Shown here: positions 3,001-23,720 of the stretch, in pieces
How the letters are laid out: each line of letters opens with the position of its first letter
How positions within the stretch are numbered: position 1 is the stretch's first letter
NCBI GenBank assembly: GCA_965112735.1
Contig: OZ218957.1
Span: 3,472,001 to 3,536,000 of the forward strand
DNA: 64,000 bases
Direction: 5' to 3'
Source of the DNA: Phaeosaccion multiseriatum
Lineage: Eukaryota > Protista > Ochrophyta, other classes
Position numbers and translations under genes: made by a program
Notes under the pieces: model-generated
The model's database searches: none
The model's input: the letters and a program-made list of their open reading frames with translations, nothing else
Told to the model about the DNA's origin: nothing

Positions 3001-6000
3001 AGAGACTCAGTAGGCAGCAGCTCTTGGCGCTCGAGGGGTATGTGGGACACCCGGCCTTCGTGCCAGAGACCATTCATCCCATCAGCAGGTAGGAAGGAAG
3101 GAACAAGGAAGGAAGGAAGGAAGGAAGGAAGGAAGGAAGGAAGGAAGGAAGGAGGCCATCGAGGGGGAGAGGGCAGGGAGGCAAGAGGCTTGATGGGGGC
3201 CTGATACTCACGTGGCCCTGGTCCTGGCCAGACACTCCACTCCTGCCTGACCCTCTCTGCCAACCCTCCTCCCCATCCACTGCCATCCACTGCCATCCAC
3301 TGCGATCCACTGACATCCGCTGTCACCCACCCTCCTCCGCCCTCCTTAGGCCGGCTGCGAAGCTGTGTGCGTGGATCATCGGCGTGGTGAATGAGTGTCG
3401 CCTCGTGCACGGCTTGCACTATGACCAACATGACCACGCACAGCAGTTGGTGATACAGCAGCAGCAGCAGCAGTTGGTGGGGCAGTCTCCTTCTCGACAG
3501 AGTCTTCTCAGACCCACGACTGCCTCTGCTGTATCACCAACTGCTGTATCGCCAACTGCCGTGTCACCAACCGCCACTGCCCTTGTGTGTGCCTCTGCCG
3601 GGCGAGGAATGGTGCGCAAAAGAGTCAGGCCCTGCACGTCGTCGGCGACCGTCTCGAGGGGCAGAGGTAGAGGAAGAGGAGAAGGAAGAGGGGGAGGGGT
3701 TGTGAGAGGCTGTGTCAGGAGTGCGGCGGCCCGTTCCGCCTTTCTCTCCCAGTTCAGTTCAGTGGAAGCGCCTTCTCTGCCCTCGACCTCCCCCCTCCGA
3801 GCACGAGCAACATCAAGAGGAGGGGGGGCTTCTACAAAGGCGGTGCTATCGGCGGCACGGGTCCGACAAGAGAAGATCATGCTGAGACTCACAGATCCGG
3901 CAGCGGAGGCCCCGGATGTAGTGGACGCGACGAGTAGGGACTTTGTGTGTCGCGACGGGACCACGCTCATGCCGTTTGCGGTGCTTGGTACCTTTAGAGA
4001 TCATGCCAAGGAGCAGCAGCAGCAGGGGGGAGGAGGGGGAGGAGAAGGGGGAGGAGAAGGGGGAGGAGGAGGAGGAGGGGGAGGAGGAGGCGGAGGAGGA
4101 GACGGAGGAGAAGAGGGAGGAGGAGGAGGAGGAGGAGGAGGAGGAGGAGGAGGAGGAGGAGGAGGAGGAGGAGGAGGAGAAGGTCGGCCCTGCTGCAACC
4201 TTGTTGTGGTGAACGACTTCTTCGACACGTACGAGAAGTCGTATCTGCTCCTCAAGCCGCTCACAGTTGGCATGTCGGGCCTTCAGGTGTTGTTCTTCAA
4301 CACCCCCGGACAGGCGGGGACTCGCTGCTGCCCACCTGCACAGCGCACGCACCCACACGCCCTGAACAACGAATGGGTCGCCGACAGAATGGTGGGTGAG
4401 GGCCGGGTAGGGCAGTTGGTGATACAGGGAAGCGAGTTGGTGATACAGGACAGGGCTGTGTGTGGCCGCCGCCCTCCACTTCCCTCCCCTTCTTCGCCCC
4501 CCCATGACCCTCTTGCACTGCTTGCTTTTTGCTCTTCTTCTTGTCCTTGCTCTTCTTCCTCTTCTTGCTCTCCCTCTTCCCTTCCTCCCCCCTCTCCCGT
4601 CCCCTCCCCTCCCCTCCCCTCCCTTCAGCACGAGCTCCTGCTGCATGTCAACGCAAGGGGCGATCTCTCCCTCCAAAACCGGCCCTTCTTCGTCCTCGGC
4701 TTCGGCAACGGTGCCTCCATTGCATGTGCCTGGGCCGTCCGTCACGCCTCGCACCCTGTCTATCGCCACACCCTCCGAGGCCTGCTGAGCGTCAATGGAT
4801 TCGCATCCGTCGATTCACAGTTGGCGGCTGTTCTGCACAGCGCTGCAAAGGTCTTTGAGGCCGCTCCCAGAGACAGGTACTCCAAGTCAATGCGTGGGTG
4901 CGCGCGTGTGTATTAGATGTGTGTGTGCGTGCGTGTATGTGTGTGTGCGTATGTGCATGTGTGCGTGGGTGTGTGGCGGGTGAGTAGTGAGTGCATGCGT
5001 ACTTGCTTGACAAAGAAAGATAGACCCGCATCTTAGCCTCACCCCCCTCCCCTGCCGTCCACTGCCATCCCCTCCTTCCTCCCAGACCCGACCTCCCGGT
5101 GACTTACTGGAGCAAGTTCATCTTCAGCGAGCGTTACATTCGGGCCGTGGATCAGAGGCTCGCACTCAACATATACTCCGCCGTCGCCAACTTCATCAGC
5201 CCCGTGAGTTGAAGCTTCAGTTCATTCGACCCTTTCTCATGTTCAGCACCTCGAAAGGGACAGCTTGATGAGCCACACACGGACTCATGCGCACACCCGT
5301 ACTCACACGCACGCACGCACACCCACACATGCACACCCACCCACACAAGCACACGCAAGCGGAAAGAGGGATGCAGTCAGGGCCTTCTCTTAAATAGCCC
5401 CTCCTGCTCCTCCTCCTCCTGCTCCTCCTCCTCCTGCTCCTCCTCCTCCTCCTGCTCCTCCTCCTCCTCCTCCTCCTCCTCCTCCTCCTCCTCCTGCTCC
5501 TCCTCCTCCTCCTCCTCCTCCTCCTCCTCCTCCTCCTCCTCCTCCTCCTCCTCCTCCTCCTCCTCCTCCTCCTCCTCCTCCTCCTCCTCCTCCTCCTCCT
5601 CCTCCTCCTCCTCCCCTCCTCCTCAGACGGGCATGGCCGGAATCGCCAAAGGAGCTCTCCTTCACTCCGACCTCACCCCCGCCCTTCCTGAGCTCCCCGT
5701 TCCTCTTCTGTTGCTCCACGGTACCGACAACTCCCTCGTCAACGCCGCTAACGTCGACGCCTTCCTCAAAGGCCGTAAAGCTGTGCATGTCTGGTCTCAT
5801 CAGCTCAAACCGGCGGCCTGCAGTGGTTGGTCATTCGGCGGCCACAACTGCCTTGGCGAAGCGGGGCTGGCGAGCTTGGCAGAGAGCCTCTGTAGGCAGG
5901 GGGGGAAGGGTGCATTTGTGGTGTGGGCTAAGGGGGGGCACGAACTGAGGCAAGAGGCCAAACACGTTGTGTTAGACATGTTGCAGGCCGCCCTAGAGAA

Positions 6001-9000: not shown

Positions 9001-12000
9001 TCCATCCACTGCCATCCCCCCCCCTCTGCTAGGCGGTACTGCCTTGAAGATCCAGCGCACCTTCCGCGGGTATATGGGCCGGCGGGTGGCGCAGCAGAGG
9101 AGGAGGGCGGTTACAGCCGTCGTGCTGCAGAGGGTCTACAGAGGGCATCTCGGCAGGTGAGCTTTAGTTTCAGTGCATCAGACCTGACGAAAGAGGAGCT
9201 TCAGTTTTGGTGACCTGAGGAGTACGGAGTTTCAGTGTCGGTGTCACTTTGCGGAGCCCCTCTCTCCTGCCACGCGCTGTCCCTTCCCTTTCTTCTGTTG
9301 TATCATGTTCGTATCACCAACTGCCTCTTACGTTTGTGATGATGTATCGCATCGCCAACTGCTCAGGGTTGCCGCCAACCGTAAGCGCGACAAGCTCGGA
9401 GAGTTCGTGCGTGTGTGCTCCTCCGCAATGCGCGTTCAAGCCGCCTTCAGGGGAATGCTCGCCAGGTTAGAGTGCTCGTTATACGGAGAGAGAGAGAGTT
9501 GGGTGCTTCGGAACCCTGACCCTGACCCTGACCCTGACCCCGACCCTGACCCTGACCCTGACCCTGACCCTGACCCTGACCCTGACCCTGGCTCTGACCC
9601 TGACCCTGGCTCTGACCCGGACCCTGCTTGCCCTCCCCCCTTTCTCCCCCCCTCACTCTCCCTCCCCCCCTCCCCCCCTCCCTCCCTCCCTCCCTCCCTC
9701 CCTCCCTCCCTCCCTCCCTCCCTCCCTCCCTCCCTCCCTCCCTCCCTCCCTCTATTTACCCCATACCTCAGAGTGGTGTTCAAGCGAGCAAAGGTGAGCA
9801 ACTTGGCAGCGACAGAGATCCAACGCGTCCTTCGAGGCTACCACGGCCGCAAGCACGCCAACCGAAAGAGAGAGTGGGAGAGCACCCCTCAGGGGCCCGA
9901 GCGCATCAAGTTGGGTATCCGGCTCATTGAGGATACCCGAGCCAAGTTCGATCAGCAGGGGGGCGAGATTGATGCCCTGCATCGGGCTCAGGAGAGGGTG
10001 GAGGCCAGAGTTAGCGCCATTCACTCGGAGTTGCAGGGATCGCATAAGGAGCTCGGGGTACTGGAGCTGGAGCTCGAGGTGAGTTTGACTTTGAGTTCGT
10101 CGGGAAGGTGTCGGACTCCGAGGCGTGACGTTGATATCAATCATCACCTCTCTTCCCTCTCTGCAGTGGGTGGATGGCAATGGATGGCAGTCGACGGCAG
10201 TGGTCGATCCTCCTTGTCTTATCTCCTCTCTCTGCCACCATCTCATTGCGTCTCCGGTGCTTGCTTTTCATTCTCTCTGTCCCCCTCTCTCTCTCTCTCT
10301 GTGTGTGCGTGTGTGTGTGCAGCGTGTGGACACGCTCGAGCAAGAACTTCGGCAACTCACGCACGAGAGAGACCTTCTGCAGAAAGGCATTCTGTCTGGT
10401 GCCATCGGAATCAGCGACACCGCCACCCTGGAAGCAAAAAATGGAAAGAGTGGGAGTAAGAAGAGCGGAGAAAGAGGCAATCCCTCCTCCTCGTCGTCAT
10501 CGTCCGAGCTGCAGCAGCGCAAGGCGGAGGCGTATGCCCTGGAGATGAACATTCAAGTCAAGAGGGCTGAGAGGGAGAGACTCAAGCGCAGCCTGGAGAG
10601 CGAGTTCTCTCTGTCCTTCGCCGAGGTGCAGGGCAAGAGGCAGCAGCTGCGGCAGCTGCAGGTGAGCGTGTGTGTGCCTGTACGTGTGTGTGTGTGCGTG
10701 TGTGTGCGTGTGTGTGCGTGTGTGTGCGTGTGTGTGTATGTGAGTGCGTGCGCGCGTGTGTGTACTTTAGAGGGGCACGGAGGAGTCCGTCCTCTATCCC
10801 CTTTAAACCCCCTCCTTCCTTCCCTACCCCTCCTTCCTTCCCTACCCCCCCTCCCTTCCCTTCCCTCCCTCCCTCCCTCCCTCCCTCCCTCCCTCCCTCC
10901 CTCCCTCCCTCCCTCCCTCCCCCCCTCTCCCCAGGTATCCATCTGTGAATTGGAGTCCACCCGTACCCGCAAGACGCGTGAGTTCTCCCGCCTGCAGCGC
11001 AACCTCATGACGCTCCTTGCCGAGCAGAAGGAGGAGCTTGACGCCATTCGAGCCAAGGGAGTGGCGCTGGAGACAGCAACAAGCACATCTGCAGCGGCTG
11101 CAGCCGCCACAGGTGAGGGAGGGAGGGATGGAGGGAGGGAGGGAGGGAGAGAGGGATGGATGGATGGATGGATGGATGGATGGAGGGAGGGAGGGAGGGA
11201 GGGAGGGAGAAAGGGACGAAGGGAGGAAGGGGAGGGAGGGAGGGGAGGGGAGGGAAGGGAGGGGAGAGAGTTTGACTTACGCTAGGCCTGGCATGTCTAT
11301 CGCTCCCCCTCTTTCTTTCCCTCGCTGCCTTCCCGTCCATCCATCCCCTCCCCTCCCCTCTGCCCTCTGCATACACAATGGACGAAACTAACGCTCTGCC
11401 CCATCCGTCTACTGCCATCCCCTGCCATCCCCTGCCATCCCCTGCCATCCCCTGCCATCCCCTCTTCAGCATCGAGGGCCCGCGAGCACGAGTCCCGAGC
11501 GGGGGCAATGTACGCGCAGACCGAGGAGCTCCTAAAGTTCCAGTTTATGAGCATGAGGTGAGCTGTCAGCTTCAGTTGCATGGCCAGTTTCAATTCCAGT
11601 CCCACATTCAGTTTTGTAGACTTGAGTCAGATTCAAATCAACACAATACCAATCAGCCCTCCCTCCCTCTCCCCTTCCTCCCTCCCCCCCTCCCCTCTCA
11701 CCCCTCCCCCTCCCTCTCCCCTTCCCCCTTCCCCTCCCCCCCTTCCCTCTCCCCCTCCCTCGGGCCCCTCCCTCTCTCCCTCCCTTCCCTCCCTCCAGCC
11801 TGGGCTACTTCTCCTCTCTCAACATGATGAAGCAAATGCGCGACATCAACTCCGACACGACAAGTGCGGCCATCACGGGCACGGCCGATGCAGCAGCAGC
11901 GGCGGCAGCGGCGGCAGCGGCGGCAAGCGTCCCTAAGCTACTGGATCCGAAGGGTTTGGGCAGTCAGGTCAATGGAGTGCTTGCTGCTAGCGCGGAGAGG

Positions 12001-13353
12001 CACCCTCAGGCTGTGGTGGAGAGAAAGAGGGAGAGGGTGGGGCAGCTCAGAGAACAGGAGGTACGTCACACCTACGTAACACATCCATTCACTCACCCAC
12101 CCACTGACGCACTGGCACTCCCTGACTACCGCCACCCACCCACCCACCCACCCACTGACTTACTGCCACCCATTGACGTTGACGTACTCCATCCCATCCA
12201 CTGACTTACTGCAGGCGCTGGCGAAGGAGTCCCTCTTACACCCCACTCCCTCTGACCTTCGTGTGTGGGACACGGACGATGTGTGCCGCTGGCTCGACTC
12301 GCTCTCACTCTCCGAGTACGCCCCGGCCTTTAGGGAGGGCAAGGTGGATGGAGCCTTCATGCTCGAGCTGCGGGCAGAGGACTTTAGAGACACGTTAGGG
12401 ATGCATCATGCTCTTCATCTCAAGAAGCTGATCGTTAACTTGGAGAAGCTCAAGCCGCTGAGCGAGGACGAGATGAAGAAGAAGGCGGCGGTGCTGAGGG
12501 AGGACGGCGCCGATGACCAGAGGGAGGGCATCCCGGACAAGGACACGGTCTTCTCGCAGGTGGGTGGGAGGGGGAAGAGCTGCGTGGATGGGCGGGTGGT
12601 TGGTTGGTTGGTTGGTTGGGAAGGAGGGAGGGAGGGGTGGGGCGCGGGTTGGTTGGCTGACGAAGAGAAAAGGCCTTTGACTTTCTCGCCGTTGAGGATA
12701 CCCACCGCTAACACGCACCGCCCCTCCCTTCCATCGCCATCCCTTCCATCGCCATCCCTTCCATTGCCATCCCTTCCATTGCCATCCCTTCCATTGCCAT
12801 CCCTTCCATTGCCATCCCTTCCATTGCCATCCTTCCATTGCCATCCCTTCCATTGCCATCCCTTCCATCGCCATCCTTCCATTGCCATCCTTCCATCGCC
12901 ATCCCTTCCATTGCCATCCCTTCCATTGCCATCCCTTCCATTGCCATCCCTTCCATCGCCATCCCTTCCATTGCCATCCCTTCCATCGCCACCCCTTCCA
13001 TCGCCACCCCTTCCATTGCCATCCCTCCCTCCCTCCGGCCCCTCCAGGTGCGAAATGGGCGAGTCAAGCGCGTGCAAGAGAGCCTCGCTGCGGGCTTTGT
13101 TGTCGACTCCACTGACGAGAAGGGCAACACGCTGCTCCTCGTTGCCGTGCAGCAAAGTAACTTGCCTCTGGTGGAGATACTGCTGAGGCATGGGGCAGAT
13201 ATCAAGCACGCCAATGCTGCAGGCAACACCGCCCTCCACTACGCCATGGCCTACGACCTCACGGGCAGGATAGGCGAGTACCTCATTGGGCAGGGGGCGG
13301 ATGACAGCATGCACAACAAGCAGGGGATGAGCCCTTATGATGGCTTGGGCTGA
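1..13353 (+). CDS. Large multi-exon protein (5'-partial): dynein stalk-head/MTBD-like segment, alpha/beta-hydrolase fold, IQ motifs, coiled coil, SAM domain, C-terminal ankyrin repeats
   Basis: GT-AG exons keep one frame: <1-348, 771-887, 1374-3088, 3350-4391, 4629-4876, 5086-5203, 5627-8463, 8715-8812, 9033-9156, 9367-9465, 9772-10078, 10323-10661, 10935-11112, 11470-11557, 11799-12060, 12215-12559, 13048-13353. Motifs: ELSELRCVRAPSPAVRMVL..FVPETIHPISRPAAKLCAWI (dynein stalk-like); LGFGNGA, PLLLLHGTDNSLV, GGHEL (hydrolase fold); IQRAWRG, VQRVARG, IQRTFRG, LQRVYRG, VQAAFRG, IQRVLRG (IQ); WDTDDVCRWLDSLSLSEYAPAFREGKVDG (SAM); GNTLLLVA, GNTALHYA (ANK). Confidence 0.85.
12721..13025. repeat. 15-bp intronic minisatellite (CCATCCCTTCCATTG / CCATCCCTTCCATCG)
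   Basis: About 20 tandem units inside intron 12560-13047; source of the MAMEG/GRDGN pseudo-ORFs. Confidence 0.95.
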
Positions 13354-21065: not shown

Positions 21066-21192
21066 TCCCTCTCCCTCTGTGCGCGCGCGTGTGTGTGTGT
21101 GTGTGTGTGTGGCCCATATAGCAACACCCTGTCCGCCCTGCCAAACGAATGACACGCACAAGTGGTGATCACAAATGGCGATGACAGTGACA

Positions 21193-21833
21193 TCACTCGT
21201 CGTCCACGACTGTGCACACGGCCTGCCCCTTGGTGCTGTCTTGGACGTTCTCGAGCAGCTTGCTCAGAGCGCTCGCCTCCATTGAGACCGTGATGACAAC
21301 ACTTTAGAGGAGGGGCAGCGATGAGGCCATGAGGCGATGAAAAAAAGAGCCACCAAAGAGCCAAAGAGGGAAGGGAGTCACAGATGGACGGACGGACGGG
21401 CGGACAGGAGCTGTGAAGGGTGTTGAAGGGTGCGAAGGAGCGCTGACGAGTCATTTGAGAGGGAGGGGTAAAATGAATGTCATTTGCGCAGAGAGACAGT
21501 GACGTGAGAGAGAGAGAGAGAGAGAGAAGCCCCGCCCATCCACTGCCGTCGCACTGACATCCACTGCCATCCTACTGCCCACTGCCAGACTGACGCACTG
21601 ACCTGTCGGCAGTGAAGTACTCGTCCAGCCGTGTGCATTGACTTATGCTGTTGTACACGCCCCCCACCATGTTCATCGGGGCTGAGATTCGCAGAGTGGT
21701 CATCGGCAGGCGCACCTCCTCCTCCGCGTCCTTCAGCACCTGGGACGCCGCACCGCCGTACGCTGAGAGGGGGTTCAGAGGCAGGGTGAGGGTGCGGATG
21801 AGGGTGAGGGTGAGGGTGAGGGTGTTGGTGTGG

Positions 21834-21867
<34 letters not shown>

Positions 21868-21929
21868 GGGTGTGGGTGAGGGTGAGGGTGAGGGTGTGGG
21901 TGTGGGTGAGGGTGAGGGGGCGGGTGTGG

Positions 21930-21963
<34 letters not shown>

Positions 21964-21989
21964 GGGTGAGGGTGAGGGTGACGGTGACG

Positions 21990-22035
<46 letters not shown>

Positions 22036-23720
22036 GGGTGTGGGTGTGGGTGAGGGTGAGGGTGAGGGTGTGGGTGTGGGTGAGGGTGAGGGTGAGGGTG
22101 AGAGTGTGGGTGAGGGTGAGGGTGAGGGTGAGAGTCGGGGCAGAGGTTCGGTCAGAAGAGGTGCAAGGACAGAAAGGCGGATCGATCGTACCTCTGTATC
22201 CGGTGGGAGAGTCGCAGCCCCAGCAGCACAGGAATGGCCCAGTACGGAGGAGAATGACAGTGGATGGGGAGGAGGAGGAGGAGAAGGAAGGAAAGGGAGG
22301 AGAGGAAGGGGGGGGGGGGGGGGTGGAAGGATGGAGGGAGGGAGAGAGGGAAGGAGGAAGCATGAGAGATGCAAAAGCGGCGGAAGTCGGTCCTACGTCG
22401 GGAGAGGAAAGTGGGTAGGGTGGGGTAGTCGTTTCGGCGCATCAATCGCCACGGGACCCCACTCTACCCTTCGCGATGTGACGAGTGCGTTTTGTCCCTC
22501 TTTCTGTCTTCTCTCTCGCTCTCGCTTCTTCTCCCTCTCCCTCCCCCCCTCCCTCCTCTCCCCTCTCTTTGTCTCTTACCTTACGAGCCCCCCTGTTCCC
22601 AGCTTAATCCCTCCGGAGTAGCGCACCACCACCACCATGACCTCGCTGAGTCCTGCCCCCTCGATGGCTGCGAAGATGGGCTGCCCCGCGGTACCGCCTA
22701 GGAGGATGTTAAGGAAGGGGATGCATCACAGCAGACGCACCAGCAGCAGCTCAGGAGACGCCGAATGTGAGAGGGTTGGTGCTAGAGTAATGGTACACTT
22801 TCGGAAGACTGTCGATAATGAGAGGGTTGGTGCTAGAGTAGCGGTACACTGTCGGTACACTGTCGATACACTGTCGATCATGAGAGGGACTCTTGCCCCT
22901 TTGTGCTTGAGGTTCAGTGCTCTGTAAGTAAGTCAAGCCATGGGCTGCCATCGCAACCACACACGGCATGCACCGCACCTGGCTCTCCGTCGTCGTAGAA
23001 TCTGTGAGTTTCGTCGAGTCCTTTCCACGCCCAGCACCAGTGCCTGTGGGAGGGGTGAACAACAATAGAAACGTTCACAAGTCAATTGCTTGCTCCTGGT
23101 CTGGTCGGTATGTTGCAGAGAGGCTCTGTCCTTCCTAACCCGAACAGTGCAATAGAGGTATATCCGCCCTCACTAGAGGCTCTAACCCATATACTTCACT
23201 CCCCTCCTCCAAAACCTCTCTGGTATACCCTACTTCCCTACCTCGCTTTGGGGTGTTCCTTGACCACCTGCACACGTCCATGCACGTGTGCAGCAAGGCG
23301 CACGACAACAGATACACAGAGACCAGCAGGAGGGCACGGAGGACGGTTAGGAGGGTCCAGCAGCAGCACAGACAGACAGCGTTAGTGTCCCATCCTCCAC
23401 CCAATTACCTCAGCGAGAAAGCTGTCAGCTTCAGCGAAGGAAGCAGCGTGTGCGGCCTTCCCAATGAACTTGCTCTTCTTAATCGTCTCCTCCGTCTCCC
23501 ACACCTTCCCGCCTACCACTGTTGTGATGGCACCCTCTACCGCCTCGTCCTGCGATGCATCAGGGGAGGCCCTGCAGCTGCTAATAGATACAGCTCGAGT
23601 GCAGCGTAGGGGAGGCATCCAAGCCAGCGCACGGGAGGAGAGGTGGGTCACGCGCAACAGAAGCATAACGATCGCTGCAGAGTGGCGGGGCCGTAGAGTT
23701 TCTACATCCCTGCGCGCCAT
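21193..23720 (-). CDS. yigZ: IMPACT/YigZ (UPF0029) family protein with N-terminal targeting extension
   Basis: Exons 23720-23409, 23267-23242, 23043-22979, 22697-22580, 22193-22192 (2-nt microexon), 21762-21603, 21301-21193. Motifs [52 protein letters not shown]. The start may be the downstream Met of MLLLRVTH. Confidence 0.9.
21783..22135. repeat. Hexamer microsatellite (GTGAGG/GTGTGG)n in IMPACT intron
   Basis: About 350 bp tandem array; reads (CCTCAC)n on the transcribed strand, just upstream of the acceptor at 21763. Confidence 0.95.

Follow-up and report, generated by a model that had tools for sequence, protein, structure and literature searches.

Exons of one or two nucleotides are about as small as the spliceosome can physically define, and to our knowledge only a handful of them have been proven, all of a single nucleotide and all in land plants. 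In the plant genes APC11 and VPS55, 1-nt exons have been experimentally demonstrated to be constitutively spliced (PMC4674806, PMC8831610). Recursive zero-nucleotide splice sites, for their part, are AG/GT ratchet points at which the regenerated junction is the next donor (reviewed in PMC13149111; here and below, a slash marks a splice boundary). We took as our subject the 64,000-nt stretch of algal DNA presented above (the window), which has the composition of GC-rich eukaryotic DNA. A gene of the YigZ family that lies in it has a gap of 817 nt between its fourth and fifth exons, and inside the gap is a dinucleotide, AG, with an acceptor AG directly before it and a donor GT directly after it. 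Being flanked in this way, and being required both for the reading frame and for conserved residues, it would fall among the ultra-short microexons (<3 nt), and the AG exon would belong to a rare yet known kind of exon. It is not a zero-nucleotide recursive site, as two bases separate the AG from the GT, within a gap of 817 nt. The reading that we prefer, and to which we give a probability of about 72%, is that the gap is made up of a 386-nt and a 429-nt intron, both ordinary GT-AG, with a constitutive 2-nt AG exon between them.

Structure and identity of the YigZ-family gene

The genome assembly that was screened comprises 67 Mb in 22 contigs. The gene lies on the minus strand of the window, from 23666 to 21193, and has six exons, or seven counting the AG microexon (Table 1). 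Exon boundaries were fixed by anchors and the exons were joined in a local translation; outside the gap, every junction has canonical GT-AG ends and keeps the phase. For external searches the gene was taken one exon at a time. Exon 2 is itself very short, as many exons of this genome seem to be. The microsatellite that occupies 21790-22140, within intron B, is of the (CACCCT)n type, about 350 nt long and almost free of G.

Table 1. Features of the YigZ-family gene in the window (minus strand; positions are those of the window).
Feature	Length (nt)	Positions	Strand	Description
Exon 1	258	23409..23666	-	ATG, presequence and start of the YigZ domain (…FLAE); donor GAG/gtaatt; 40-50% identity to brown-algal orthologs
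Exon 2	26	23242..23267	-	VVKEHPKA + AG
Exon 3	65	22979..23043	-	begins with (R), then 21 further residues
Exon 4	118	22580..22697	-	GGTAGQPIF… + AG; PF01205, 45.8 bits; donor AAG/gtaagaga
Intron A (putative)	386	22194..22579	-	GA-rich 5' part, CT-rich tract, ACTGTCAT at 22261-22254, 3' end …ccaccggatacag
Proposed microexon AG	2	22192..22193	-	third base of the Arg codon (AGA) and first base of the Ala codon (GCG)
Intron B (putative)	429	21763..22191	-	donor gtacgatc; (CACCCT)n-type microsatellite at ~22140-21790; 3' end ccccctctcag
Exon 5	160	21603..21762	-	CG + 20 residues…DEYFTAD + AG; 46-52% identity to orthologs
Exon 6	109	21193..21301	-	T + 10 residues…CTVVDDE; TGA stop at 21195-21193; 37% identity to orthologs

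Taken by itself, exon 4 scored above the curated cut-off of 27 bits for PF01205 (UPF0029/IMPACT_N) in a Pfam profile search, and it also matched the NCBIfam YigZ models. Against TIGR00257 (YigZ), exon 4 as the sole query from this gene gave 46 bits, and the full-length orthologs P0008 and P0025 gave 132-144 bits, under the cut-off of 168. The closest full-length relatives come from brown algae (Pylaiella, Ectocarpus spp. and a EukProt entry) and from Chrysoparadoxa australica. In exon-by-exon order and in its motif, the gene agrees with bacterial YigZ and with the brown-algal orthologs; unlike bacterial YigZ, it is nuclear and eukaryotic, is split into six or seven exons and carries a presequence at its N-terminus. 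No RWD domain was found at the N-terminus, where exon 1 has no Pfam match and reads as a presequence followed by the start of YigZ, and the gene differs in this from eukaryotic IMPACT, which combines an RWD and the ancient domain. To judge from its sequence, it is a gene of the bacterial-type YigZ branch carrying an N-terminal presequence. The original prediction had called it IMPACT, a label that is right for the family (PF01205) but loose, since this is the YigZ branch and the RWD-type IMPACT of the same genome sits on another contig. That paralog (G000:C2:4524667-4527846, L002, minus strand) has LGPDRFKHINN in place of LVRAYG, has introns different from those of the YigZ gene and includes a 29-nt exon (GCATTCACCTGGGCCCTGATCGGTTCAAG).

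It had been recognised from the outset that a 2-nt assembly error at the boundary of one of the large exons would overturn the proposal, and the gap is indeed full of simple repeats, which are hard to assemble. Yet the Logan contigs of X19 and X21, two public runs of this organism (word depths of about 63-78 and about 500), showed 0 differences and 0 gaps against the window over 21180-21774, 22144-22254 and 22363-23700, the simple repeats between these stretches being skipped, and one contig of 1181 nt was colinear from 22144 to 23286. These contigs were built from the reads of the runs, and their sample is possibly that of the assembly. As they agree with the window base for base at all three boundaries, at high depth and with no gaps or other letters, an assembly error is excluded for practical purposes, and the probability that we leave to it is negligible.

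Frame, motif and splice sites in the 817-nt gap

Exons 1 to 4 add up to 467 nt (phase 2). Exon 4 ends GGG CTC GTA AG (GGGCTCGTAAG/gtaagaga) and exon 5 opens at 21762 with CG TAC GGC (ccccctctcag/CGTACGGC), so that joining the two directly shifts the frame; the local translation then reads GGLVSVRRCG... and gives a 307-aa product with a nonsense tail. Between them is found ccaccggatacag/AG/gtacgatc, that is, gatacAG/AG/GTacga at 22196-22188. When the two central bases (22193-22192) are added, the translation reads GGLVRAYGG and yields a 245-aa protein that is colinear with the brown-algal orthologs and ends as they do. Four of the six bases of the Arg-Ala codons are already present at the edges of exons 4 and 5 (AG...CG), and the AG would complete the G-x-K-x-G-x-x-G-L-x-R-A-Y-G-G motif of the YigZ/IMPACT family, which is near-invariant. 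The exon ends, the mid-gap site and the frameshift had all been correctly described in the original prediction, as we saw on re-reading the sequence. It had also dismissed the other nearby donor of exon 4, CTC/gtaagg, and here again our results agree: this donor leaves phase 0 and scores 0.2 bits, against 4.4-13.8 bits for the 23 real donors (our matrices were built on no more than 23 donors and 23 acceptors, in four genes of this genome).

Comparison with the family leaves little latitude as to what should stand at this place. Mapped on eight relatives, exons 4 and 5 are in every case separated by precisely two residues, R and A; the spans of the two exons are 151-187 and 191-242 in P0008, 98-135 and from 138 onwards in P0025, 3-40 and 43-94 in P0013, and 67-104 and from 107 onwards in the bacterial protein P0158. 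In a census of the motif, the 268 family proteins that were fetched held 253 occurrences of the G-x-K-x-G-x-x-G anchor, and at the fixed positions after it were found L (251), V, A, I or C at the variable position (236), R (244), A (247) and Y (247), the L-x-R-A-Y spacing being preserved in about 97% of the 253 occurrences. We then enumerated every segment of 1-60 nt in the gap that is bounded by AG...GT or AG...GC and keeps the frame open with either donor. This gave 77 candidates, among which only the 2-nt AG produces GLVRAYG, the other 76 inserting or deleting residues. On paper there are therefore 76 other combinations by which the frame might be restored through a different small exon or a GC donor, at the cost or gain of a few residues (an 11-nt exon would give GLVRVEWAYG, and a 1-nt G would give GLAYG), and the strongest acceptor of the gap is indeed another AG, at 22394-22393. 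All of these combinations, however, break the L-x-R-A-Y spacing, and most would have to use a GC donor within a purine-rich repeat, or else a poor acceptor, so we see hardly any chance that one of them is the true solution. Boundaries of the U12 or AT-AC type were also considered, and they are incompatible with the sequence.

The splice sites of the proposed exon are of unequal quality. AGAGGT is the sole AG-NN-GT within the gap, and no AG dinucleotide occurs from its end (22190) to the terminal AG of the exon 5 acceptor. The donor, GAG/GTACGA, scores 5.4 bits, which makes it the best of the 13 GTs in the gap and places it in the range of the real donors. At 1.8 bits the acceptor is weak: it falls in the bottom third of genuine acceptors, whose scores run from -2.7 to 17.6, and ranks third among the 30 AGs of the gap; the two stronger ones, at 22392 (9.8 bits; the AG at 22394-22393 already mentioned) and at 22468 (4.0 bits), do not yield a conserved product.

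As the two loci described here were chosen by readers seeking such rescues, our chance figures may be too favourable, both those for the YigZ gap, obtained from 2000 dinucleotide-preserving shuffles, in which AG[AG]GGT appeared in 13% and [CT]AG[AG]GGT[AG], which includes the YAG/GTR context, in 1.7%, and those for the second locus. The 13%, in which the splice context is ignored, lends some credit to the view that the gene is dead, with a single intron and a 2-bp AG slippage deletion (GTAAG[AG]GTAAGAG or CAG[AG]CG), the AGAGGT being coincidental. Slippage is plausible in the AG-repeat context of both boundaries, no transcript of the gene is known, and YigZ, for which we know of no demonstrated essentiality, is probably dispensable. 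Against a dead gene stands the fact that the indel must have fallen exactly on the splice junction, at about 4 of roughly 735 coding positions. Moreover, exons 5 and 6 are intact, with their frame, their stop codon and an ortholog-like identity that is comparable to that of exon 1; the gap is about twice as long as a normal intron; and the coincidence, of 1.7% once the context is included, would have been repeated at 2% in a MutS-family gene. We thus consider it unlikely that the gene is dead.

A second locus in a MutS-family gene

The second locus lies on contig C1, in a gene that matches MutS_V (G000:C1:2143312-2144088; L022 726-1502). A 25-nt exon, ...CCCAATTGCGGTGGCAAG/gtaagagaga, is followed by a gap of 752 nt, after which the next exon begins TACCTTC..., and the sole AG-NN-GT of this gap is again AGAGGT (aaactacag/AG/gtaaagac, with the AG at C1:2143760-2143761); the chance of such a site in this gap is 2% with the splice context. 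With the AG, the product reads TGPNCGGKSTF, in which the Walker A motif and its serine are intact, and without it a stop is met. The two genes are alike in that a lone AGAGGT stands in a gap of some 750-800 nt and in that the AG restores an invariant motif; they differ in the gene and in the motif concerned, and their introns are not homologous beyond low-complexity tracts, the only similarity that we found between the gaps. The 9-mer ACAG/AG/GTA is identical in both, as is the 11-mer of the upstream donor, AAG/GTAAGAGA. The latter occurs 145 times in the genome; in the window, the 9-mer occurs once, and so does the donor as the 10-mer AGGTAAGAGA. Two independent genes that need the same dinucleotide, each having one well-formed site, are hard to explain as two pseudogenes.

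The lengths of the gaps point in the same direction. At 817 and 752 nt, each exceeds all 24 mapped ordinary introns (141-678 nt), whereas the half-gaps at both loci, of 327-429 nt, have a typical intron length. This bears on a further alternative, in which the gap would be a single GT...TC intron whose 3' end is cut, in a non-canonical manner, two bases early (ctctc/AGCGTAC). Such a cut gives exactly GTAAG+AGCGTAC and works at the MutS-family locus too (atccccc/AGTACC), and, the mRNA being identical, a transcript alone could not separate the two mechanisms. It would nevertheless leave unexplained the double length of both gaps, and also the presence in each gap of one well-formed YAG/AG/GTR (joint chance ~3e-4). 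We know of no mechanism by which the spliceosome ligates upstream of a perfect YAG, and we regard this alternative as very improbable.

One might go further than two ordinary introns around an AG exon at each locus, and speculate that there is a whole class of 2-nt AG exons in this genome, born of paired intron gains at AAGAG, with AAG/GTAAGAGA as the donor and ACAG/AG/GTA as the core. We hold this to be rather doubtful. A genome-wide search for the pattern ACTGYCAT...YAGAGGTR returned 30 sites (the control gave 4), and the majority of the 30 resemble ordinary exon ends; no third 2-nt exon could be established among them, and AGGTAAG is found ~400 nt upstream only at the YigZ and MutS loci. 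Should such a class exist, it would point to site-specific intron gain and to a spliceosome for which exons under the steric limit are routine, and would make of this alga a natural system for the study of stepwise (recursive-like) splicing and of the birth of introns.

Further features were noted at these and other loci. In a transhydrogenase gene (G000:C4:2303700-2311500, L036, minus strand), all of the 16 mapped junctions (16/16) join in frame at canonical sites, and no point was seen at which a microexon is needed; one of its introns is of the GC-AG type (TGGCAG/gcgagt). The 12-mer CCACTGCCATCC, with at most one mismatch, is present 49 times in the window, where 0.74 are expected, partly in 10-bp tandem arrays (sites are found, for example, at 3277-3318, 11409-11460, 12761-13024, 21561-21572 and 22254-22261), and also in introns of the MutS-family (L022) and transhydrogenase (L036) loci. 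In the sense orientation it precedes the 3' splice site by 17-70 nt in 8 of the 26 introns mapped, among them those before both proposed 2-nt exons; it may be a motif of intron 3' ends or a dispersed microsatellite.

Proposed intron gain, splicing and likeness to known systems

In Chrysoparadoxa (L004) and in Ectocarpus sp. 6 (L005) the motif lies inside one uninterrupted exon, and it is likewise uninterrupted in fragments predicted from further brown-algal DNA contigs. Two other intron positions, after ...LAE/LGR and after ...GEP, are common to the gene and to Ectocarpus. With no intron at the motif in Ectocarpus and Chrysoparadoxa, both introns that flank the AG are specific to the lineage. 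Conservation of CAG-AG-GT in the orthologous introns had been proposed as a check; it is not seen, as the orthologs have no intron at all in this place. To the extent that sequences can tell, this fits a young gain, and a function of the site is still possible. The ancestral exon probably read ...GTAAGAGCG..., and in this lineage each of its two neighbouring AG/ positions may have received an intron. An origin as an introner or copied cassette was rejected, the unique parts of the gap having no second copy in the genome and the CT-rich tract alone matching elsewhere.

If the gap is spliced as two introns, the mRNA would read GTA AG/AG/CG TAC, or V-R-A-Y (GTAAGAGCGTAC), and the join lacking the AG would read GTAAGCGTAC, as expected for skipping or for a dead gene. 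On an exon of 2 nt, the 3' and 5' splice sites could not both be occupied at the same time, since U1, binding from -3 to +6, reaches into the acceptor AG; exon definition is thus impossible and the introns would have to be removed sequentially, by intron definition. Their removal would be like that at a recursive splice site, but with two bases left behind. It is likely that either order would work, since AAGAG/GTACGA would remain as a usable donor were intron A out first, and acag/AGCG as a usable acceptor were intron B out first.

We also searched for transcripts. The run search brought up 18 entries of RNA or probable RNA, whose word shares were 0.06-0.08; 17 were metatranscriptomic libraries, seawater being the main source. 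When the metatranscriptomes X1 and X2 were aligned to the window nothing was placed, the shared words being those of the (CACCCT)n microsatellite. JGI metagenome contigs were scanned for exact matches to the 3'-terminal 31 nt of exon 4 and to the 5'-terminal 33 nt of exon 5, and none was found; searches for transcript-derived proteins, made with the ortholog P0008, with exon 5 and with the open frame of exon 4, retrieved those of brown algae and other relatives only, none from this organism. In these searches no RNA run, metagenome contig or transcript-derived protein contained the gene, and use of the exon is inferred from the DNA. The proposal of a 2-nt AG exon spelling V-R-A-Y-G stands as far as the DNA goes, in that AG is the sole canonical GT-AG solution that restores the motif without an indel, and the exon is probably used. 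The further suggestion that skipping of the exon would act as an on/off switch found no support, as nothing points to regulated skipping.

Gene finders will mis-annotate such genes or discard them as frameshifted pseudogenes, and annotation of this genome thus needs a step that is aware of microexons. If the two introns and their AG exon are real, they would offer a clear example of two intron gains separated by two bases, and the occurrence of a 2-nt exon in a stramenopile alga, with at least one further instance in another gene of its genome, would show that exons of this kind have originated independently and recently.

Among the described systems, the 1-nt exons of plant APC11 and VPS55 come closest. 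The proposed AG exon would share with them a length of less than 3 nt, a position between two ordinary GT-AG introns, a role in keeping the frame and the property of being missed by annotation and by aligners; as with these plant exons, some relatives hold the same bases within one uninterrupted exon. It differs in being 2 nt long, in belonging to a stramenopile alga and in being known here from DNA alone, where the plant exons have RT-PCR or RNA-seq proof, and also in that it is not conserved across the orthologs examined and is apparently young. With recursive sites it has in common an acceptor and a donor that are nearly superposed and flanking introns that would be removed stepwise; unlike at those sites, the two bases between AG and GT are proposed to stay in the mRNA, and the introns measure about 400 nt rather than tens of kilobases.
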